From: Rebecca billardiae RCC1528 | Taxonomy: Eukaryota; Protista; Haptophyta | Reading direction: 5' to 3' | NCBI GenBank assembly: GCA_965240325.2 | Contig: OZ251229.1 | Location: 2,232,001-2,296,000, forward strand | Length of the DNA stretch: 64,000 bases | Position numbers and translations under genes: made by a program | Part shown: in pieces, positions 37,814-54,861 of the stretch | Numbering within the stretch: the stretch's first letter is position 1 | Layout of the letters: every line of letters begins with the position of its first letter | The notes under the pieces: model-generated | The model's input: only the letters and a program-made list of their open reading frames with translations | Told to the model about the DNA's origin: nothing | Database searches by the model: none

Positions 37814-38534
37814 AGTGGCGGTCCGCGGCGGTGCCTGCTTATTCGACGGCGCGCGCGGAATTCGATCGGCGCAGCAGCCATCATCTAATGCAGTAGAAGG
37901 CTGTCGGCGGCCGCCCGTGCACTCATCGGCATCGCAGTGCCGGCAGTCGTGATCGTTTATTCGTCTGTAGCTCATCACCGGCCGCGCTGCTCAGCTAGTC
38001 AGACTCTCGGAGAGACAGTGAGAGTGTGCATGACGAGCAGAGTCTGAGCAGCCGCGAGAGTTTACCGCGTGACTGATGTAGTAGCAGCAGTCATTATCAG
38101 TATATTGCATATGTCGTAGTGTATCGTCATCAATAATCTGCGCCAGTCAATATGATGAATATATATATATCGCCCGGAGTCTATAAATCGTCGGATCCTC
38201 TCGGGCTGGCTGTCTCAGTGTCTGTCCCGGCCCCGTGGCCACCGTGGTCCGTGCGGCTGCGCGCGCCGCCATATCATATATATATAGCGTGTCGATCATA
38301 ATATGGCAGCATATATATATATAAATTATAGCCTGATATGATCTGTCGTCATCATTCGTCTGCTGTATGTAAATAATATATGCAGCATGCCCTGTGATGA
38401 TGATGTCTATCCGTATCATCGGCGGATTCGGGATTGATGATGGCGGCATGGCTGGCGGCGACCGGCCTGTTGCAAATTGAATAAATACCAACAAATATGT
38501 GACGGCGACATCCCAGTGGGAATCCGCGTGACGC

Positions 38535-38684
38535 CCGGTTGGATGCAGAGTGTTCTCTACGAGGATGGCGTCTGGACCGCGGGGAACGCGATCGCTGCAC
38601 CCCTGAGGTTGTCGTGAGTGCAGCAATCCACTTGCGCCAGGCTGGGGCGTGACCTACGTCGAGAACACTCTGCATCCAAGTGGG
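38535..38684. repeat. Short inverted-repeat element (MITE-like)
   Basis: TTGGATGCAGAGTGTTCTC ... GAGAACACTCTGCATCCAA is a 19-bp perfect IR that extends imperfectly. Confidence 0.7.
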
Positions 38685-38869
38685 CACCCCCTCATGTCCA
38701 AGCGGAAGCAGAAGCTCTGCGCGCGCGGTCGACGCGGCAAGAAAGCTCAGAAGGGCTGGAGCAGTGGAGCTCAAGATTCAGCGCATGCTGCAGCCCGCAA
38801 GACGCGTGAGGAGGCGGGCACGAGGCGCTACGCAAGTCCCGGTCGACCTCGATCTCATCGTCCGAGTCC

Positions 38870-39412
38870 TCAGCTCCAGCGCCGGCCTTCCGCTGGAGCT
38901 GCGCCGTCACGTCGTGCGACGTGCCAGTCGTTGAGCTCGCTGAAGATGGGGCGGAGCGCGCAGGGACCGGATGTCGGGCGCATGTTGCGCGGGAGCGCGG
39001 CACGGCACGGTGCGCACGAGCACGGCCAGCGACACACCCACACGCGACCCGCCTGGTCGATGCGCAGGTTGTGGAAGCTCTTCCGGCTTGAGTGCGGGCG
39101 CGCTTCTCGTCGCGCGTCGCCGGGTCGATTGTGTCGTACCCCGGAAGTCGCGGTGATCTCGGCGTAGGGTACCACCACACGATCGCGCGTCCTCGCGAGC
39201 TGCGCGCGCGTGCGGTTCATAATCCGCTTCGAGCCGCCCAGCTCCGTGTCCATCTGCTTGGCCGTCCCCAGCCAGCGCGCGATCTCCTCGGTGAAGCTGA
39301 TAATGCGGGGCGCCCTCCTCGAGCGCCGCCGAGGCCCGAGCGCATCAGCTCCGGGTTGACACTGGCTCGCAGAGCGCTTCCTGGACGACCAGCAGCGACG
39401 CGTGGCACTCAT
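38870..39412 (-). pseudogene. Possible degenerate DNA-transposase C-terminal fragment (Sola-like)
   Basis: KQMDTELGGSKR ... KSFH ... VCRWPCSCAPC resembles the D..GG.K / SFH / R..C.C..C pattern. The match is weak. Confidence 0.25.
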
Positions 39413-40389
39413 TGAGCCCGGTCACAACGGGGCCATCCCAGCCGTGGATGACGCCGGCGGCAACTAGTCTGATGACACTGAATCCTACGAGTACTATCTC
39501 ATTCTCTTGCAGTACTGTCCTGTTGAGCACCGTTCGGACACTGCGCCGTAAGCTACTACTGATCCTCGACGCTTACCTCTGGGCCCCGACACTGCTTTGG
39601 GGGCGTCTGGGGACTGATCGTGGCTGGCACCGAGGTGGTCGACTTCATCTACTTGGCTGGCGCACCTTCGACTCCTCCAATACCCAGTAGAAGTACCGCG
39701 AGCTCTCGTGGTGGCACTCCGAGGAGCGCTGCACCACAAGGCGAGCGTAGATTGCAGATGGTGATTGCGAGCGCGCCCGCGGGCGAGACTACGCACAACT
39801 CGAGCACGATGGGGAAGGTGTTGAGGAAGATCCCGGTCGTTTTCTCGCCCGCAGACCACAGCATGATTCTCGACCAGATGGCTGAGCGCGCCGACGCGCT
39901 CGATCACAACTCGTGTCGGCACTGCACGTGGACGGCGTCGACGAGTGTCGACCTGACTGCCGAGCGTGCCGTGACTGTATAGCATGCAGCGTGGCGCACA
40001 CTCTGTCTAGAACCGTAGGCAAGCGTCGACGCGCGTCGTCTGGTGCGACGCGCGCCTCCTGAGCGCCTCCCGTGGCCGCCGCCGCAGCGCGGCAGCGGCC
40101 ATCATGAAAAAAATTCGCTCGCCGAAATTCCCCCCGATGTCGCGTTTGGTCTCACTTCAAAATGCAACAAGCCGACCGTGCTGCGGACTAGCATCAGTGA
40201 CTCACTGGACTGTACACTCTACTGTACAGCGCCGGATCGCAGGATCAGGATGGACAGTCATTGCAGACAGCGGCGCGCATCCGAAGAGCTCTAGGCCTGA
40301 ACCCTGATTCCTGAAGGGTCGCATTGCCACCCTTCGCCCCGAGGTCAGTAATGACCTCACACAAACCCGGCGCGCATGCGGCGAGCCGG

Positions 40390-41575
40390 TCACGGCCACG
40401 GCACGAGTTGCAGGCGGCGCAGCTTGCGCTCGTACTCTGCGGCCTCGAGCCAGTCGAGCTCGCACTTGCCCTCGCGGAACATCTGCATGCGGCTCGGCTC
40501 GGTGAGCAGCCCGCAACGCATGTCGAACTTGTACGTCTCCTTCTGGCGCGAGTGCTTGCTGTACTGCGCGAGGATCGACGGGGCGTCGTCGAACTGGCCG
40601 GCGTCGAGGAGCTCGCGCACCTCCTCGTCGTCGTCATCCGAGCCCAGCTCGGCGTCGTCATCCACGAGTCCGAGCGCGCGCTGCTCAGCCGCGTCGCCGG
40701 CACCGTCGGCCGCCGCGGATCCATCAGGGCTGGCGCTGCGCGGCCGTTTCCGCGCGGATCCACCCGCCATGCCGCCCAGGGCACGCTCCGAGTCGAACAT
40801 GTCGTCATCGTCCTCCTCGTCGTCGTCCTCGGAATCGGCGCGGTCCGCGTGGCGCGTCTGCTCAGCTCGAGGATGCGCCCCTGAGGGGAAGTCCTCGTCC
40901 TCGTCCTCGTCATCGTCCTCCTCATCAGGCGGAGGGCTCGGCCGCGGAGGCGAGGGCGGAGGGGCCTGCGGCGGCGGCGGGAGCCGCAAGCCCGGCGGCG
41001 GCGCTCCCAGCTCCACCAGGCTTGCGCCACCGCCACCGGCTACCGGCGGGTCAGCGCCGCCATAGGCCTTTGCGCACTCGGCCGCGTCAGCGAGGACCAG
41101 CCTCAACCGCTCAAAGTGCACCCAGCCCGCTCGGTCCCAGGTGAGGAACGCCGGCTGCAGGTCGAAGCGCCACACGTGGCCGTAGTGCTTGAACGACACG
41201 ACACGCCCACGGATCATCGGACTCGGACCTTCGTACCTCGACAGCGCAGACACGATGTCCTGTGCGCACATGCACACGCGCGCACAGCACACGCGCGCGC
41301 GAGGGCATACGGGCCGGCCGGGGACATGAGCCAGGGTGCCGCGTCGCGCACTGACGGGGGCATCCCACCATAGGCGCGTAGTGCGACACCCCAACGAAAG
41401 CCGCGTGCCTGCTCGCGCCGGTGTGACGCACCTGGTCGAACTGTGCCATCGTGTCGCCGTGCAGCTCCTGCGGCAGGCTGTGACGCGCGATCAGCTCGCG
41501 CAGAGCCTGGTCGAGGCAGATGCCGAGCTGCGACTCGCGGTAGACTTGCGCAGCGTGCGACGAAGCATCCTGCAT
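40390..41575 (-). CDS. TFIIA-like protein: gamma (small) subunit fused to the beta-type C-terminal domain; intron 41260-41431
   Basis: N-terminus YRESQLGICLDQALREL..QFDQ..RGRVVSF..HVWRF is gamma-like. An acidic linker follows. C-terminus ILAQYSKHSRQKETYKFDMRCG..FREGKCELDW is beta-like. Confidence 0.78.
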
Positions 41576-41765
41576 CGAGAGGGACCCGCCGCACTCTACG
41601 CAGCCCAGCCCAACTTCACCGCGCCGAGCGAGATGCCGATATGCAGCTGTCGATCGTCGCCTCGTCGGCCCTCGCGCTCCGGAGCGCGGCGGGCGTCAGT
41701 GGCTCCGCGCGGACACTCAGACCGCCCTTGCTCAGGCTACACAGCGCAGTATTTTACTCACCAGC

Positions 41766-43898
41766 ATGGCGGCACGCGAGCCGCCGCCGGTGAGTGTGAT
41801 ATGCACACAGCCTTTGATGCTGTTGTGGCGCGGGGCCTTTGGAGAAGAGGCATGCGCGACCCTGCAGTCAATGTGCGCTCGCGCGCAGACGACCGGGCGG
41901 CTCGAGGCCACCGACGATCAATGGACGCCCACTGAACGGCGGCTACTGCACGAGCTCGAAGCGATGATTGGGGCCCTCACCGGTCAGCCGCCACACGCAG
42001 ACGAGCTGCCGCTGCTGCCGCTCGTGACGAATCCTGCGTCTCCGTACCCCACGGAGGATACGGCCCACACAGGGCAGCCTCTCTTCCCCCTCGGGCTCCA
42101 CGTGGACACGAACGGCGGGTGTCCGCGCCGCTTTGCGTCCGCGCTGTTGTACCTGACAACGCCGGCAGGGGGCGGGCACACGTGCTTCCCCTTGGCAGAG
42201 GCGGAGGCGGCGTCTGCCGCGCTCGACGCATCGAGGCGGCTCATAGACGCGAGGGTCTCGCACACCGGCCAGGCGGGCGCCAAGCTCCAGCCCTTCGCCC
42301 AGGCGATCGTGCGCGCCGCAGAAGCGGGCGCGGGCACGAGCGTCCGCCCGGAGAGAGGCAGCCTCCTCGTCTTCTGGACGCGCGGCGACGACGGGGCGGT
42401 GTGCCCGTACTCGTGGCACGGGGCCAGGCGCGTGGAGGGTGTCGCGCACGGGGGCAGCGCTGCCTCGTCGGAGACGCCGCCGCCCAAGGTGCTGCTGCGC
42501 AAGTTCAAGGAGCTGCCGATCCGCCTCTGGCCGCGCGAGCAGTCGGCGCATCCTTCAGCTCGCGCGGCCGACGTGCCGCGTGCCGTCGCCGAGTTCGTGC
42601 GCGATTCCCGGCGAGGGTTCGCGCTGGCCGCGCCGCACGCGGCGATCCCGTGCTGGCCCTACGCACTCATCGACCAGCTCGCCTGCCGTGGCGGCGCGCG
42701 GTGCGCAGCCACGTGGCCTGTGCTCGCGCGGCCATATCGCGGTGCGCGCAAGCGCGCTCGCTCGGCCTCGGGCGACGAGAGTGGAGCGCAGGGCGCGAGC
42801 GGTGCAGTGCAGGGCGCGAGCGCGCCGCTCGTCGAGAACGAGCCTGGCCTGTGCGCGGCGATGGCGCGCGTGCACGCGCAGGTGCTCGCAAGCGGCGCGT
42901 ACTCGCGTGGCTCGCCCGAGCCGTGCGCGTGTGGCGCGACTGCGCCCACCGGCATCGGTGCGCTGCTGCTGGCTGCGGCCGCGCCGGCCGTTGGCAACGG
43001 GTGCGCTGCTGCCGCCGGCGACGCCGAGCCCGTGCAGACGCCGTCAGCTGCAGCCCATGGCGGCGCGCTCGTGGAGCTCGGCGAGCTGGACACCGCGGAG
43101 CTCGAGTGCGCGCTGAGGCGCGGCGCCGCCGTCCGCCACGCGGCCGAGCAGTGCAGCACGCGCGCGTGCTTTGGCGAGCGCTGGGTCTTCCCGCCGCGCA
43201 GCGCGTGCGTGCTCGCGAGCATGTGCCACTGGGGTCCGGCGCTGCGAAGAGTGCGCCCGCGGGGCGGCTACCCGCTCGTGGTGGTCGACCCGCCGTGGCC
43301 GTCGCACTCCGCGCACCGCGCCGGCGCGTACGAGACGATGCCCGACGTGTGCGCGCAGCTGCTCGCGCACGTGCCGATGCGCGAGCTCGTGCGCGCAGAC
43401 GGCGGCCTCGTCGCCGTGTGGACCACGAACAAGCGCGCGTGGGGCGAGTGGGTCGTGAGCGAGCTGTTCCCGCGCTGGGGGGTCGAGCACGTGGCGACGT
43501 GGTTCTGGCTCAAGGTCGGCGCCGATGGCGGTGGGCTGGCGACAGGGCCTGTCGACTCGGCGCACCGCAAGCCGTGGGAGCCGCTCTTCATCGGCGCCGC
43601 ACCGCGCGCTGTCGGCGGGCCGGAGCGCGCCGCGCCGCCCGCGCGGCGCGTGCTCGTCGGCGCACCCGTCGGGCACTCGATCAAGCCGGTGCTCGCTGAC
43701 GAGCTCGCGCCGTACACACCGGCGCCCCAGCGCGCCGCGGAGGCGGGGGACGTGCTCGGGCTCGAGCTCTTCGCCCGAGAGATGCACGCAGGCTGGCACT
43801 CCGCGGGAGATCAGGCGCTGCTCTACCAGAACGAGGCGTGGTTCTGCCGCGGGCGCGGCCGAGCGCTCGAGCGCGATGGCGAGGTACCGCAGCGGTGA
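41766..43898 (+). CDS. 2OG-Fe(II) dioxygenase (P4H-like) fused to MT-A70/METTL4-like adenine methyltransferase
   Basis: Dioxygenase motifs: LHVD, SALLYL, GGHTCFP, PERGSLLVFW, SWHGA. MTase motifs: VVDPPW, VWTTN, WFWLKV, HRKPWE, HSIKP, LELFARE. One uninterrupted 710-aa ORF. Confidence 0.85.
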   Translation: MAAREPPPVSVICTQPLMLLWRGAFGEEACATLQSMCARAQTTGRLEATDDQWTPTERRLLHELEAMIGALTGQPPHADELPLLPLVTNPASPYPTEDTAHTGQPLFPLGLHVDTNGGCPRRFASALLYLTTPAGGGHTCFPLAEAEAASAALDASRRLIDARVSHTGQAGAKLQPFAQAIVRAAEAGAGTSVRPERGSLLVFWTRGDDGAVCPYSWHGARRVEGVAHGGSAASSETPPPKVLLRKFKELPIRLWPREQSAHPSARAADVPRAVAEFVRDSRRGFALAAPHAAIPCWPYALIDQLACRGGARCAATWPVLARPYRGARKRARSASGDESGAQGASGAVQGASAPLVENEPGLCAAMARVHAQVLASGAYSRGSPEPCACGATAPTGIGALLLAAAAPAVGNGCAAAAGDAEPVQTPSAAAHGGALVELGELDTAELECALRRGAAVRHAAEQCSTRACFGERWVFPPRSACVLASMCHWGPALRRVRPRGGYPLVVVDPPWPSHSAHRAGAYETMPDVCAQLLAHVPMRELVRADGGLVAVWTTNKRAWGEWVVSELFPRWGVEHVATWFWLKVGADGGGLATGPVDSAHRKPWEPLFIGAAPRAVGGPERAAPPARRVLVGAPVGHSIKPVLADELAPYTPAPQRAAEAGDVLGLELFAREMHAGWHSAGDQALLYQNEAWFCRGRGRALERDGEVPQR

Positions 43899-44061
43899 GC
43901 CCGCTGCTGATATTGCGCGCGCGCGGCTGCTGCCAATAATACAGTAATCGTGAAATTCCGAAATTCCGGCCTTTTCGGCTTTTCCCCGCGGCGGGCGGCG
44001 GCACACGTCCGGGCGCTTGCAAGCACCGCATCCACCCGGCAACCAGCTTACGCCGTCGGTG

Positions 44062-45285
44062 ATGGAGCTGATCACCCCCGGGGGGGCTGGCGAGCCGGGC
44101 CACCGGGAGCGCGATGTTGACGCCGTCGCGCGCGAGGCAGACCGGCTCTTCTGGCTGTTGCGAGGCCTGGCGCCATCGGAGACGTCCGAGCGTGGCGCTG
44201 CGGGCGTGCTGGCGGCCGCAGCGTGTGCGCTGGATCTGACTCCTGCCGGGCACGAGCCTGAGGGGCCAGGAGCTGCGCCTGAGCCGAGCGACGAGGACGC
44301 CCTGCCCACCGAGAGCGAGGACGACGACCCCGACCTGTGTGCCATTTGCCTCGACCCAGTCGAAGGCGCCGATGAGCGGGGCGCCTCGCGCACGCTCCCT
44401 TGCACTCACGCGTTCCACGTCGGCTGCCTGACGCGTTGGCTGCAGGTGCGAAAAACGTGCCCTCTGTGCCAGCGAAACGTGCAGCTCAGCCGCTCCGCCC
44501 AGCTGCGGGCTCGGCGCCGGGCACGCAATGCGCAGCGCGAGGAAGACGCGCAGCGCGAGGCGGACGCCGCGCAGCGCGAGGCAGACGCCCGGCGTGCGGC
44601 GCATGAGGCGTGGGTGCAGCGCGAGGTCGACAACGCCCGGCGTGCGGCGCATGAGGCGCTCCAGCAGCGACGGCGTGCGGGCGACCTCAATGGCGACTAC
44701 CCGTTGCTGCCGCACCGCACCCTGGGGCCCCCGGCGCCCCCGGCGCCCCCGAACTTCGACGTGCTGGTGCGGCTGCTCGATTTTTTGTACCTGGGCGAAG
44801 ACACGCGCGCGGACACGGACACCGAGCCCGATGCCATGGCGCCAGCTGCTCAGGCGCGCGAGCCACAGGCCACGCCGGCAGGCGCTGCCGTGCCGCGCCC
44901 CGACGAGCCGGCCACTCCGCCGGCCGGTGCGGACGACGGAATGGCGCGCCCGGCCGGTGCAGATGCTGAGCGGCGGCCGCAGCCGCCGACGTGGCCGCCA
45001 GCTGTCGGGCAGCGCGTGCAGGCGCGCTACCCACCCACGAGCTGGAGGTGGCGACCAGCGCGCGTGGTTCGCGCCAGCAGCGCACATGACGAGCCCCTCC
45101 GCCTGCTCTTCGACGGGTTCATGCGCTCGGTCAGCGTGCCAACGAGCGCTGTGCGCGTGCAGATGGGTCGACGCTCCCAGAGCCGCAGTGCCGCCGCGCG
45201 TCGCGCCCGTCACGTCATCGACCCGGACGCCGGCGTGGCCACCGGCACCGGCGCGGCTGGCGAGACCGCGGCCACGGGTCAATGA
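44062..45285 (+). CDS. RING-H2 E3 ligase with C-terminal Tudor/Agenet-like domain
   Basis: CAICLD..LPCTHAFHVGCLTRWL..CPLC. C-terminus VGQRVQARY..WRPARV..LLFDGF. Confidence 0.8.
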   Translation: MELITPGGAGEPGHRERDVDAVAREADRLFWLLRGLAPSETSERGAAGVLAAAACALDLTPAGHEPEGPGAAPEPSDEDALPTESEDDDPDLCAICLDPVEGADERGASRTLPCTHAFHVGCLTRWLQVRKTCPLCQRNVQLSRSAQLRARRRARNAQREEDAQREADAAQREADARRAAHEAWVQREVDNARRAAHEALQQRRRAGDLNGDYPLLPHRTLGPPAPPAPPNFDVLVRLLDFLYLGEDTRADTDTEPDAMAPAAQAREPQATPAGAAVPRPDEPATPPAGADDGMARPAGADAERRPQPPTWPPAVGQRVQARYPPTSWRWRPARVVRASSAHDEPLRLLFDGFMRSVSVPTSAVRVQMGRRSQSRSAAARRARHVIDPDAGVATGTGAAGETAATGQ

Positions 45286-48168: not shown

Positions 48169-50226
48169 TCATTCTCCAAAGACGTCGAGCTTCTTGAGGC
48201 CTTTGAGCTGCGAGACGTACTGGTACGGCGTCAGCGTCGACGTGGAGCCCAAGAGCACCTCGCGTTGGTGCGTCTGCGCGCGCGCAGGGACGCCAGGCAA
48301 GACGCGCGGCTGGGGAGTCAGCGGCCGGCCCGCCACTGGGGGTTCCGCCGCACCACGCCGCGCCGCGCCGCGCGCGTTCGGCGCGTGCGCGCACCTTTGT
48401 CAGCTCGTACGCACACTTGAGCTCGCTGTACGCCACGCCCCCGATCATGAAGACAACGAGGCGCGGGCCGAGCGTCGCGCCCTCCTCCTTCTTCTGCCGC
48501 CCTCGCGATGCCCAGCTCGGCTCCGGCACCCCGACCGCGCGCCGCGCCTCGAGCGAGACGTCAGCGGGTGAGATGCCGCCGAGGCTCGGCCCGGGCCGGT
48601 CCTTAACATAGGGAAAGTCCGCTGCCGACGCCGCGCCCGTGAGCGCCGCCTCCATGGCCGGCTTGATGCGCGGGGTGTATCGCGAGAGGTCGTAGCTCGC
48701 CGCGCTCTCCTCCTTCGCCTTGCTCGCCGGCTTCCGCCGCGGCGCCGTCTTGCTCGCGCCGCGCAGCAGCGTGACCCCGAGGAACTTGAGGTTCACGAGC
48801 GCCGTCTGGTCTTCGGGCGAGAGGCCGGCCGCCTCGATCAGCCGCTTGCGGTCGTCGTCGCGGATGCCCTCCTGCGTGATGATGTACGCCATGAGCAGCC
48901 TGATCTTGTCCATCGGCGAGATGTCACGGCGCAGCATCCCGTGCAGGTCCTCGACCAGCGCGGGTCCCTTCACCTCGCGCCCTGCGCGCGCGCGAGCGAG
49001 GGCGCGCGCGCGGCGGCGCGATATGAGGCGGCGGCGAGGCGCGCGGGGCGCGGACACGGCGCGCGCGCACGCGCACCGTCGGAGTCCTCGCCCACGGCCA
49101 TGTTTTGCTCGAGCGTGGAGACCGCCTCGAGCTGGTACTGCTTGAACCGCGCCATCAGCTCGCGCGTCAGCGAGATGTGCAGCGAGTACCGCTGCATCTC
49201 CTCCTGGTACTGCGGCATGCCACGCAGCGCATCTGACATCTCCTTGAGGCCGACGCCCTCCTTGCCCTTGTTCAGCTTGGTGGCGCTCTGGTTGGCCTGG
49301 AGGAACTGGTTGAAGTTGGAGGTGAGGTACTCGATGCAGTCCGCGATGTGCAGGTGCCGCAGCGTCGGCCACAGCGGGTCCGTCTCGTTGAGCAGCACCT
49401 CCTTCTTGAGCTCCTCGCCGCGGTTCGACGTGTAGCGGTACGAGTAGCGCTCTCCATCCGCGACTGGCAGCAAGTCCTGGATCATCGCCTGGTACGAGTA
49501 CTCGTGCAGCACAGGCGCGAGCGGGTCGAGCGTGCGGTCGACGATCAGCAGCGTCGGCCGCTCGCTCGCCCGCCCCTTCGAGAACAGCGCCGTCGCCGCG
49601 CTGAGCCGCTCGAGCTTGTCCTGCACGAGCTGCGCGACCGTCTGAGCGCACGGGTGGCCCTTGGCCGCGAATCGGATGTACGGCATCTGGCCGTACATCG
49701 CGAAGAGCGTGGCGAGCTTGTCCGCGATGCGGTGCTGCGCCGGCACCGCCGCCGTCGTGCCCGGCGTGTAGATCGCGCCGAGCGTGTCCGGCACCTCGAG
49801 CGAGAACGCCTGCGCCTCGGTCGCCACGTATTCAAAGTTGAGCTCCTGGAACGTCTTGACGCGCGCGACGACGGCCGCGGCCTTGATCTTGGCGAGCAGC
49901 GCGTCGGGGAGGTGCGAGGTGAACAGCACGTGCACCTCCCCGTACATCGGATTCCTCGGGTCGGCGAAGTCGGCGATCATCGCGTTCACGCTCTCGACGG
50001 TCGGCGTGATCAGGTAGACGGCCGGGAAGTTGCGCAGCGGCTGGCGGGAGGTCTCGAGGGCCTCGACGAGGGTGATGCCCTCCTCGGTGATCTCCGAGAC
50101 GCGGAGCACGCTCGAGATCGCGCGCAGCGCCAGCTTGTCGCACAGCAGCACGCCAGGCGCGCCGAGGTGCAGCGACTTGAGCACATCAAGGATCCGCCCG
50201 CGCGTCTGCGAGCGCAGCCCGCGCAT
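48169..50226 (-). CDS. SEC1: Sec1/Munc18 family protein, two introns
   Basis: RQPL..FPAVYLITP, LLIVDRTLDPLAPVLHEYSYQAM, WPTLRHLHIA, YDLSRYTP, VVFMIGGVAYSE. Confidence 0.93.
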
Positions 50227-50557
50227 TGTGAGGTAGTGCGGCCGAGGGGACGATAGACCACCAATCGGCGGAGGGCTCGGCGCCGAGTCACTCTCGACCG
50301 AGGCCTCGCGCAGCACCTTGTAGCCCGACGTCGCGGCTCGACACGGCCGGGGCGCGCGGCCAAGCCGGAGGGCGGCGGCGGCGGCGGGTGAAGACGCCGC
50401 TGCTTCGTTCGATCGGCGCCTGGGGAGGCACGATGGCGGCCGAGCTTCACCGTCACCGGTCCCTGCTAAACTTTAGTTACTGCTGACTGTCTAACCCTAA
50501 TTGTCACTGTCAGACGACTGTCAGCATGACTCGCGTCGCGCCGCGCGGCCCGCATCA

Positions 50558-53500
50558 TCACGTGTAATAGCTCAGCTGCTTCGTATGCTGCGAGCGTGCC
50601 GCCTCGCCGAACTGCTCGTTCCACCGGTACAGCTCCTCGACCGCGGCCGACTGCCGCGAGAGGCTCGGCGCGATCACGAGCTCCTGGCCCACGACGCCGT
50701 CGCGGAAGAAGTCCGACATGCGGATGGGCCGGAGCGCGGGCGACGCACGCGCCGTCGGCGGCGCTGGCGAGCGCACAGCCGCGTCCGCCTCGGCCGCCGG
50801 GGCAGCCGCGACCGCAGCCGGCTGCTCCGCCGCGCGGGCAGCCGCGGCCGGAGCCGCCTGCAGGTCGGCCGCCGCCGCGCCTCCCGCCGCGCGCTCGTCG
50901 CTCAGCAGGTCGCGAATCGGCTGGTGCGCCGCGCGCACGCACAGCGCCTTGAGGTCGGAGCCAGAGTACCCCTCCGCGCGCGCCGCGAGCTGCTCGAGCG
51001 AGACGCTCGCGTCGAGATCCTCGTCGTGCAGCAGCAGGCTCAGGATCTGCAGCCTTGCGCGCCGCTCGGGCAGCGGCACGAGGATGCGCCGCGGCAGCCG
51101 GCGCAGGATGGCGTCGTCAAGGTCAAACGGCCGGTTGGTCGCGGCGAGCACGACCACCTGCTCCCACTCGCGCGTGCGCAGGCCGTCCCAGTGCAGCATG
51201 AACTCGTTCTTCAGCTCGCGCACCGCCGGCTGCTCGTCCGAGTTGCCCCGAGCGTGCAGCATCGAATCCACCTGCGCGCGCGCGCGCGTGCGGTGCGGAC
51301 GAGGGCGGCGAGACGGTGATCAGCCAGAGATCCAGAATCGAATAAAGAAAAAAAGGCGGAATAAGAAATCGCCGCGGCGGTGCGGCGCCCCGGCGTGCGC
51401 TTCGAGAGGTGCGGCGCAGCGCGGGCGCTGGGGCCGGCGCGCGGGCCGCGGCGCGCACCTCGTCGATGAAGAGCACCGCGGGGGCGAGCTTCGCGCACAG
51501 CGTGAACACGGCGCGCACGTACTTGTTGCTCTCGCCCAGCCACTTGGACATGATGGTGCTCAGCGTGAGCTGTGCGCGCGCACCGCGCGAGACACGACGA
51601 CGGCCGCGTCCGCAGCACGCGCGCGCGGGGCCGCATGCGCGTCAGCGCTCGAGCGCGCGGGCCCGCGGCCCGGCCGCGGCGCGACGCAGCGCGTGGGTGA
51701 CGTGCATGCGACGCACCTGCAGGAAGCTCGCGTGCGCCTCCGACGCGACCGCCTTCGCCAGCATCGTCTTGCCCGTGCCCGGCGGCCCAAACAGTAAAAC
51801 GCCCTTAGTCGGTGTCGTGAGGTTGCCTCTGCTGAACAGCTCGGGCCGGAGCAGCGGCAGGGTGACCACCTCGCGGAGGGTCTGCTTCGCCTCGTCGAGG
51901 GTGGCGATGTCCGCCCAGCCCACGCCCACCTCCCCCGGCGGCACCACCGATGCGAGCAGCGACTCCTCGAAGCGGTCGCTCACCTCGACCAGCCGCGGCG
52001 CGCGCTCGCGCCGCCGTGAGCACGCCGCTGCGTCACGCGCGCCCGCCTGCAGATGGGTGTGCGCCAGCACGAGCGGCGGCGCCGCGGTGGGCTCGGGGGG
52101 CGGGCCGGCGGGGCGCCGGGCGCACGCCAGCGCGAGGCACTCGGCGTCGACGGCGCCGTCGTCGCTCGAGCCGCGCGGCGAGCACGGCCCGGCGAGCGCG
52201 CCGCCCGCATCGGCGCCGCCAGCGTCATCGCCTCCGTCCTCGCTCGAGCGCCGGGCACGCGTCGTGGCAGTTGTCCTGCCCGCGTCAGGCGCACGGTCGG
52301 CGGCTGGCGCGGAGCACGCGCGCGGCACTTCGGCCGACGGCGCGTCGGCCGGCCCGCCGTGCGCGTGCTGCGCGAGCAGGTAGTCCCCCACCGCCCACGC
52401 CAGCACGTGGCACATCTCCTCCTCCGAGCGTATTGCCGCGCCCGCGCCGTCGGCCGCGCCCAGCTGCCGCTCGAGCTCGCTCAGGTCGACTGGCAGGCCG
52501 TGCTGCGCGCACACGCGGCCGAGGGCCTTGCGCTCAGCGTCAGCGCAGAGAGCGCGCTCGTCGTGCCGCATCTGGGCGAGCCATGACGCGCGACGCACGC
52601 CGGCGGGCGGCTCGAGCGGCACGACCGCCGCGAAGCCTCGAACACCGCCAGCGCTGAGCGCGTGCGCGCGAGGCGGCGCCGGCTCGCCCTCGTCCGGCGT
52701 CGACGCGCCGTCGGCGCCGGCGTGCGCGGCTGCGTGCGCGTCGGGGTGCGGCTCGGGCTCGGCGTCCTCCGCACACTCGCTCGCGCCCGTCGGCGAGCCC
52801 GAGCCTCGCGGGTCGGCCGCGGCGAGGAGGTCGGTGAGTGCATCCTCCGACCGACTGCGCTCGGCGCCTCTCGCGAGCACGCCGACCACGCGCGGCGGGT
52901 GCGTGGCGGGCTGGCTCGTCGCGAGGCCGATGACGACGACGGGGAGGCGGCGCGCGCTCAGCTGGCTCAGCTCGCGCTCCAGATGCGCGCGGGCCTCGCG
53001 CTCGCGAGCGAGCGCGTGCGCGTCCTGCACCACGAGCACCGTCGGCTGATGCTCGTGCGCGGCGATGCCGAACGCAGCCTCAGTGAGCAGTGCGTCCAGG
53101 GCAGCGGGCGCGACCAGCGCGACGAGCGACGAGAGCAGCGTGCTCGGGAGGCGCTGCCCGCCCGAGGCCTCGTCGCCGAACTGCCGCCGAAGCCAGCGGC
53201 TCACGTGCGAGCGCTGCCGGTCCAGCACGACCACGCGCATGCCGAACTCGGCGGCGAGGCCGAGCACCAGCTGCTCTTGGGCCGCCCTCGCGCCCGGCGG
53301 CGCCTCGAGCAGCAGGTGGCTCAGGTTGGGCAGCCGGCTGGTGATGGGCAGCGCCTTGGCGCGGCCGAGCGCGTAGGCGAAGGACGCGCGCAGCTGGTGC
53401 AGCGTGGTGTCACTGCGCGAGCGGGCGGGCGCGGGGCGGCCGGCCGATGGGATGCGAGCACGTCAGGGCGCCGTGCGCACGCGCGCCCAGCGCGCGCGGC

Positions 53501-53781
53501 GTTGCCGATCCGCACCTGACCGGATAGCGCGGCCGGAGCGAGGTGGACGCCTGCATCTGCTTCGTGTCGCGCTCGGCGTGCTGCACCAGCTGCTGCATGC
53601 ACACCGCGATCAGAAGCTGCCGCAGCCAAGCGACGTACAACACGACCGGGAAGTGCTGGCACACGACGGTCGCCACGTCCAGCCAGAGCGGGCGGCTGGC
53701 CAGCGCGGCGATGCGCTTCTCGCAGGTGCGCACGAGCGCCCACAGACGGTCGACGGGCGGAGCCAAGGCGTCGGCACCCAT
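50558..53781 (-). CDS. AAA+ ATPase (MSP1/ATAD1/spastin-like), spliced
   Basis: GVLLFGPPGTGKT (Walker A), VLFIDE (Walker B), KNEFMLHWDGL, AATNRPFDLD. Start uncertain. Confidence 0.88.
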
Positions 53782-54068
53782 GGCGGGCTCGTCCACCTCC
53801 GACCAAGCGGAAGCGCTGGGATTGAGACGCCCTGTGTTCAAGCGGACGCCGCCGCCGCCATCGCTGGACCACCGCTTGGAGCTTCTTGACTGCTGTCTGC
53901 TGATCCGGGGTCCGGCTGCTGGTTCCGCTTGCGGACGCACGGCGCTCGTCTTCTCCGCGCTTGGCCGCGTGTCGGCGGCAGCGACGCCCACAGGCACACG
54001 CCGTGGGCAGTGGGCTGTCGTGTCACGCGTGTGGATTGTCGTGCTATCACAACCACATCCAACCATCC

Positions 54069-54861
<793 letters not shown>

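Follow-up and report, generated by a model that had tools for sequence, protein, structure and literature searches.

A single gene joining a prolyl 4-hydroxylase (P4H)-type dioxygenase to a METTL4-type adenine methyltransferase was found in a 64,000-nucleotide stretch of the genome of the haptophyte Rebecca billardiae RCC1528 (NCBI GenBank assembly GCA_965240325.2, contig OZ251229.1, positions 2,232,001 to 2,296,000 of the forward strand; hereafter, the window). The fusion is very probably real. Judged from its sequence, it is probably a genuine lineage-specific fusion that would encode a bifunctional nuclear enzyme, in which adenine-N6 methylation is coupled to the hydroxylation of a protein, dependent on O2 and 2-oxoglutarate (2OG). 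A preliminary description, made from the sequence of the window, had proposed this pairing within one 710-amino acid (aa) stop-free open reading frame (ORF). The ORF was confirmed exactly, as was the identity of both domains, and all catalytic residues were kept in both halves.

The ATG-started ORF lies inside a 784-codon open frame on the forward strand. Local GC content was 73–74%, and shadow ORFs of 450–530 aa overlap the gene on other frames, so that ORF length alone is weak evidence for a fusion gene. A stop-free run of 784 codons had a probability of approximately 4e-6 by chance at the local composition (73% GC), and GC content at third codon positions (GC3) was 0.78–1.0 along the entire frame. 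Homology spanned essentially every residue (aa 4–697) in this one frame. There was no Met between residues 67 and 366 of the fusion protein, and neither a stop codon nor an ATG was present near the junction of the two halves.

The ORF was intact in three independent assemblies, namely the window genome and the Logan contigs L008 and L001. L008 carried an ORF identical to that of the window, and L001 differed from it by two codons (G103E and V164A). Recovery of the same ORF from both contigs indicates that the open frame is not a sequencing error. Within the 72-Mb genome (G000) the gene was the sole METTL4-type locus and the sole member of its dioxygenase family. Apart from the fusion gene, a single P4H-like match occurred in the genome; it was remote (E = 2e-4, 36% identity over aa 110–221) and lay inside a 424-codon open frame (G000:C18:451360-451659, reverse strand; L004).

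The N-terminal half is assigned to the P4H clade of 2OG/Fe(II) dioxygenases by a family profile and a predicted fold, with a cofactor site that is predicted to be complete. As a single sequence it scored below threshold against PF13640 (E = 0.005; 18.2 bits, cutoff 27), NCBIfam gave no match, and the ESM Atlas returned only sub-threshold PF13640 neighbours. A profile of 30 family members matched Chlamydomonas P4H-1 (Cr-P4H-1) at E = 1.6e-22, Bacillus anthracis P4H at 6e-17, P4H-TM at 7e-14, and human C-P4H alpha2 at 3e-9. The AlphaFold2 (AF2) model of the dioxygenase half had a mean predicted local distance difference test score (pLDDT) of 89.3 and a predicted template modelling score (pTM) of 0.89, and its top Foldseek matches were all P4Hs. 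AlkB and TET/JBP enzymes were not the closest in either fold or sequence.

The HxD...H iron triad and distal Lys of the preliminary description were located at H112-V-D114, H218, and K241, and were conserved across the family. In the HMMER alignment to Cr-P4H-1 the distal His and the Lys were in register and the HxD segment was offset; equivalence of the HxD motif is therefore taken from the family motif together with the match in fold. H112, D114, and R122, together with a GG.T.FP motif, were conserved in 30/30 aligned family members, and further signatures were found at H77, E80, and H166-T167. Lys241 is preceded by a 12-residue loop insertion specific to the window protein.

The triad and the 2OG-binding Lys are shared with collagen/algal-type P4Hs (Chlamydomonas P4H-1, 2jig/3gze; B. 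anthracis P4H; human C-P4H; P4H-TM; PBCV-1 vCPH), to which the window dioxygenase is only 13–23% identical. It belongs to a distinct protist family (haptophyte-like and dinoflagellate) that has unusual fusion partners and differs from those enzymes in a helical insert (aa 147–186) holding the conserved H166-T167, as well as in the invariance of H77, E80, and R122. The module also has a C-terminal helix (aa 272–286). The window protein lacks the secretory signal or membrane anchor that plant and algal P4Hs typically have; no hydrophobic leader was seen, and the beta-strands that open the fold (aa 10–21) come right at the beginning of the sequence. Standalone homologs of the dioxygenase (274–425 aa) aligned to aa 4–292 and stopped there, with scores reaching E = 1e-34 with the single query and 1e-102 with the profile. 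The named sources of the family were dinoflagellates: Cladocopium, Durusdinium, Polarella, Prorocentrum, and Togula.

The C-terminal half (aa 293–697) is by homology a complete METTL4 and apparently active. The MT-A70 domain with its DPPW motif, as previously described, matched PF05063 well above the Pfam cutoff (80.6 bits against 23.9; aa 502–683), and phmmer against Arabidopsis METTL4 (AtMETTL4; 7cv6) gave E = 9e-39 over aa 466–694. Structure and mutagenesis have identified D233, Y247, K322, E325, S362, and K364 as essential residues of AtMETTL4 (PMC9512776). These correspond to D508, Y522, K602, E605, S638, and K640 of the window protein, among which D508, Y522, E605, S638, and K640 were invariant in 61 METTL4 homologs. 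AtMETTL4 R278 is replaced by K556, and H321 by R601. The window protein thus has DPPW and the active-site Y, K, E, S, and K in common with the METTL4s of Arabidopsis (PDB 7cv6-7cva), human, and Drosophila (CG14906), and differs from them in having an extra N-terminal 287-aa predicted catalytic dioxygenase. METTL4 orthologues methylate 2'-O-methyladenosine 30 (Am30) of U2 small nuclear RNA (snRNA) (bioRxiv 10.1101/2020.01.24.917575; PMC7324582; PMC9512776), and N6-methyladenine (6mA) formation in DNA by METTL4 has been described in some reports (PMC6591016; PMC9716733).

No long linker was found between the two domains, as aa 293–465 form the N-terminal and middle domains of METTL4. In an exhaustive phmmer search, standalone METTL4 relatives aligned from approximately aa 290 (P0019, aa 293–693; P0021, aa 295–647; P0032, aa 289–649). 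Their Met1 falls at approximately window residue 293 and is followed by a WP..L.D.L element, an RKRxR patch, and LVENEPGLC. The METTL4 half accordingly has the monomer-type architecture of N-terminal domain (NTD), middle domain (MID), methyltransferase (MTase), and C-terminal extension (CE), unlike the METTL3/14 core alone. Codon-position GC was ambiguous over aa 290–465, and a reading of these residues as a non-coding, chance-open, GC-rich linker was rejected because homology and structure identify them as METTL4 NTD and MID. The RKRAR basic patch in this region suggests nuclear targeting. The nearest METTL4 relative (P0017, 56% identity) was uninformative on the fusion, as its sequence is cut off at the 5' end of its contig.

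Only about 10 residues separate the last conserved helix of the dioxygenase from the first METTL4 element (aa 296–301). Model confidence fell at this point, with pLDDT < 50 at aa 286–292 in one model and at aa 292–295 in the N-terminal model. The METTL4 of Diacronema lutheri (GCA_019448385.1; KAG8461332.1, P0016) is standalone, is 49% identical to the window protein, and, like its window counterpart, is arranged head to head with a TFIIA-gamma gene. Synteny between the two species extends over a Sec1-family gene, a 1042-aa gene, and a UBC gene, with 50–73% protein identity. In D. lutheri, reading from an in-frame ATG 34 codons ahead of the annotated start (L006:7899) adds an N-terminal segment with homology to window aa 293–325. 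No dioxygenase-like sequence was found within 17 kb at the D. lutheri METTL4 locus.

The architecture was absent from relatives, and because the syntenic D. lutheri METTL4 is standalone, with a Met1 at approximately window residue 293, the fusion is read as a lineage-specific, end-to-end join. By this comparison the ancestral state is TFIIA head to head with a standalone METTL4. In the window lineage a complete dioxygenase ORF, minus its stop codon, was joined directly to METTL4 residue 1 at the ancestral position of METTL4 beside TFIIA.

The architecture was found in one species only. No other protein matching both halves was found among 1.84 billion representatives in the exhaustive phmmer search, and ten long METTL4 relatives that were checked had no additional Pfam domain. 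To our knowledge, METTL4 has no catalytic fusion partners. A targeted search of the literature turned up no relevant account of METTL4 or MT-A70 fused to either a dioxygenase or a prolyl hydroxylase, and a 2015 survey of eukaryotic adenine methyltransferase architectures (PMC4738411) mentioned no METTL4-dioxygenase fusion.

A maximum-likelihood tree of 52 dioxygenase domains placed the window domain in a small clade (support 93/84) with P0030, P0018, and a 100/100 group of P0002, P0020, and P0047/P0174. P0030 is a standalone dioxygenase from Togula, and P0018 carries an N-terminal WW domain. In P0002 the dioxygenase is followed by a C-terminal family-16 methyltransferase, closest to METTL21D/A/C/B; its contig (L002) has a 5' sequencing adapter and a poly(A) tail, which identify the contig as an mRNA. 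P0020, found on contigs of approximately 1.7 kb (L010-L013) in four runs, has an N-terminal class-I methyltransferase before the dioxygenase, closest to PDB 2PXX (E = 6e-15), which is eEF1A-KMT4 (PMC5737405). The subclade of the window dioxygenase was therefore also fused to a METTL21-like lysine methyltransferase (KMT), to an eEF1A-KMT4-like KMT, and to a WW domain, fusions that the preliminary description did not include. P0002 and P0020 are 42–50% identical to the window protein in the dioxygenase and, like it, are joined to an N-methyltransferase; unlike it, their partners belong to protein-lysine methyltransferase families and not to MT-A70, and the domain order of P0020 is reversed. Members of one dioxygenase subclade have thus become fused, each independently, to N-methyltransferases of three families that are unrelated to one another: MT-A70, family-16 KMT, and eEF1A-KMT4-like.

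Gene fusion recurs across the dioxygenase family. In its dinoflagellate clades (P0028, P0046, P0138, P0006, P0178 / P0181, P0182, P0013) the partner was either a cytochrome b5-like domain, as in Polarella and others, or a kinesin motor/KIF9-like region, as in Durusdinium and Cladocopium. A weak SIR2 match was found in P0196.

Features of the fusion gene and of its upstream flank are listed in Table 1. The divergent region shared with the TFIIA gene had been given correctly as 190 bp. The TFIIA neighbour has an N-terminal TFIIA_gamma_N domain, and the weak alpha/beta C-terminal match lies in a second overlapping ORF; D. lutheri encodes a 358-aa TFIIA_gamma_N protein at the same position. The public D. 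lutheri METTL4 model (KAG8461332.1, 356 aa; L006:7899-8000, JAGTXO010000026.1) seems to be N-terminally truncated, and use of the upstream ATG would leave approximately 20 bp between the divergent METTL4 and TFIIA start codons. The syntenic block occupies 48172-54531 of the window (Sec1-family gene, 73% identity; 1042-aa gene; UBC gene, UQ_con), and suggests that the alga of the window is a haptophyte of pavlovophyte-like type.

The gene downstream of the fusion (44017-45285, forward strand) had been described as RING-Tudor. The RING portion was upheld as a RING-H2 protein (E = 3e-12), and for the Tudor portion there was only a faint, sub-threshold hint in the C-terminal 113 aa (SGF29_Tudor, E = 0.099). 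This gene had no counterpart at that position in D. lutheri. The suggestion of a chromatin or transcription cluster around the fusion gene is weak, given that the adjacency of TFIIA is inherited synteny predating the fusion and that the RING gene is not syntenic.

A 1716-bp element lies just 3' of the TFIIA gene (38463-40178) and is missing from L001 and L008, where the unoccupied site is GGCGGCGAC|TGCTGCGGAC. The genome has at least 16 near-full-length copies at 97–100% identity, and the element is a young, insertion-polymorphic, probably non-autonomous mobile element. A reading of L001 and L008 as transcripts was rejected, as the piece they skip is this multi-copy element and has no splice-site ends. 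Since both contigs are without the element that the window carries, they stem from other haplotypes or isolates than the window.

Table 1. Coordinates of the fusion gene, its domains and motifs, and the adjoining divergent gene (positions within the window)
Feature	Position	Strand	Remark
Whole fusion gene, 710-aa ORF plus stop codon	41766..43898	+	Identical or near-identical in L008, L001
P4H-type 2OG/Fe(II) dioxygenase module, aa 1-287	41766..42626	+	Double-stranded beta-helix (predicted)
HxD iron ligands, H112-V113-D114	42099..42107	+	Invariant in 30/30 family members
Distal iron-ligand His218, SWH motif	42417..42419	+	Kept in 29/29 sequences covering the column; aligns with Cr-P4H-1 distal His
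Lys241, predicted 2-oxoglutarate C5 carboxylate ligand	42486..42488	+	29/29 covering sequences; aligns with KW lysine of Cr-P4H-1
Junction/hinge, aa 288-292, no stop, no ATG	42627..42641	+	Low model confidence
METTL4 orthologue, aa 293-697: N-terminal domain, middle domain, MT-A70 core, C-terminal extension	42642..43856	+	
RKRAR basic patch, aa 328-332, candidate nuclear localisation signal	42747..42761	+	Kept in standalone METTL4 relatives
LVENEPGLC motif, METTL4 N-terminal region, aa 355-363	42828..42854	+	Kept in haptophyte-type METTL4 relatives; pLDDT > 90
MT-A70 catalytic core, aa 502-683, with Y522, K602, E605, S638, K640	43269..43814	+	PF05063, E = 1.7e-22
DPPW catalytic motif, aa 508-511	43287..43298	+	Invariant in 61 METTL4 homologs
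Divergent intergenic region, 190 bp, common to TFIIA and fusion gene	41576..41765	.	Same head-to-head pair in D. lutheri
TFIIA gene, ancestral divergent METTL4 partner, not part of the enzyme	40390..41575	-	TFIIA_gamma_N plus weak TFIIA alpha/beta C-terminal match

As the fusion protein is understood here, each half would carry out its own reaction. The C-terminal half, by comparison with its orthologues, would act as a monomer in transferring a methyl group from S-adenosylmethionine (SAM) to the N6 of adenine. The METTL4 substrate is debated between U2 snRNA, giving N6,2'-O-dimethyladenosine (m6Am), and DNA, giving 6mA; the best characterized is 2'-O-methyladenosine in U2 snRNA, which would be converted to m6Am, and DNA 6mA has been reported in some systems. 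The N-terminal half would be a hydroxylase of protein side chains that depends on Fe(II), 2OG, and O2, with proline the likeliest target residue. Protein hydroxylation is proposed because of the P4H fold class and because the partners of the sister proteins (KMTs and WW) are protein-directed; by this analogy the balance leans somewhat toward a protein substrate for the dioxygenase half, and oxidation of a nucleic acid is less likely. The hydroxylated target could be METTL4 itself or a protein beside the RNA or DNA substrate of METTL4, and methylation would in this way be tied physically to a protein mark that depends on oxygen and metabolites.

Several points weigh against this proposal. L001 and L008 are genomic contigs and not RNA, and an internal promoter may yield a shorter METTL4. 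METTL4 is a nucleic-acid enzyme and the other fused methyltransferases are protein-directed, so that a single common protein target is not obvious. The two allelic differences both fall in the dioxygenase half, but two are too few to interpret.

Two-step modification of a nucleobase had been suggested in the preliminary description. It became a minority reading once the sister partners, two protein-lysine methyltransferases and a WW domain, were seen to point to protein. According to this idea, which is improbable on present evidence, METTL4 would make N6-methyladenosine (m6A), m6Am, or 6mA, and the dioxygenase would oxidize the N-methyl group, either to an N6-hydroxymethyl (hm6A) or N6-formyl (f6A) mark or as an eraser by demethylation; extended to the sister fusions, it would have them oxidize the N-methyl-lysine made by their own fused KMTs. 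The three independent fusions to unrelated N-methyltransferase families speak for it, N-methylation being the chemistry they have in common, as does the precedent of ALKBH8, in which a 2OG/Fe(II) dioxygenase and a methyltransferase act in sequence on one nucleoside (PMC3177185). ALKBH8 (AlkB-type dioxygenase, RNA recognition motif (RRM), and Trm9-type methyltransferase) resembles the window protein in combining a 2OG/Fe(II) dioxygenase with a SAM methyltransferase, which in ALKBH8 acts on RNA, in one polypeptide; the families differ, however (P4H not AlkB, MT-A70 not class-I Trm9), as do domain order and substrates, and the likeness is one of analogy only. METTL4 and ALKBH4 have also been reported as a writer/eraser pair (PMC6591016). 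The fold class disfavours nucleobase oxidation, which would also leave unexplained why other members of the dioxygenase family are fused to WW, cytochrome b5, and kinesin domains. We know of no P4H-clade enzyme that oxidizes N-methyl groups. In its general form, the P4H-like subclade would be an N-methyl oxidase repeatedly fused to the methyltransferase that makes its substrate (adenine-N6 here, lysine-N-epsilon in P0002 and P0020), and this is a rather remote prospect. Were it true, each fusion would be a self-contained module that writes a methyl mark and then oxidises or erases it. In this alga, U2 snRNA or DNA would be expected to carry hm6A(m)/f6A, or else m6Am/6mA that is reversible, and no enzyme of the prolyl-hydroxylase clade before the window protein would have been directed at nucleic acids or N-methyl groups.

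The preliminary description had also raised a methyltransferase that senses O2, Fe, or 2OG. It is likewise unlikely that the dioxygenase serves solely as a sensor, gating the activity, stability, or localisation of METTL4 by O2, Fe, or the 2OG/succinate ratio, whether by auto-hydroxylation or by a ligand-dependent conformational change, and without an external substrate. Prolyl hydroxylases are the classic O2 sensors, the intact catalytic residues make cofactor binding likely, and the fusion of different enzymes to the same module fits a generic regulator. The join is also rigid and spacer-less, and on the METTL4 side it involves the N-terminal domain, whose AtMETTL4 counterpart packs against the catalytic core (PMC9512776). 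Standalone members of the family are common, however, which requires the domain to act on some substrate of its own, and a hydroxylation site within METTL4 is without support. There is very little likelihood that the gene is not a functional fusion, being either two genes read together in a GC-rich genome or a recent, decaying join with one half dispensable. Long chance ORFs are common at 73% GC, as the overlapping shadow ORFs illustrate, the fusion was seen in a single species, and the dioxygenase half holds both allelic changes, each of them non-synonymous and one affecting a column that is mostly V/I. These observations are set against continuous homology in one frame, the absence of a stop and of any Met able to start a complete METTL4, the low chance of the open frame with high GC3 throughout, intact catalytic residues in both halves, and the absence of any other genomic copy of either gene that could take over.

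With coupled adenine methylation and protein hydroxylation as the preferred reading, the sole METTL4 of this alga would be tethered, without a spacer, to an apparently active O2/2OG-dependent hydroxylase. The locus also shows end-to-end gene fusion cleanly and in a form that can be dated, and a relative keeps the ancestral state from before the join. Together with the two sister KMT fusions, it points to an unrecognized functional link between a protist cytosolic/nuclear P4H-like clade and N-methylation. The fusion protein offers a tractable single-polypeptide system for the coupling of hydroxylation and methylation on one complex and for the role of an orphan P4H family, and the same system bears on direct control of adenine methylation by O2 or metabolites.

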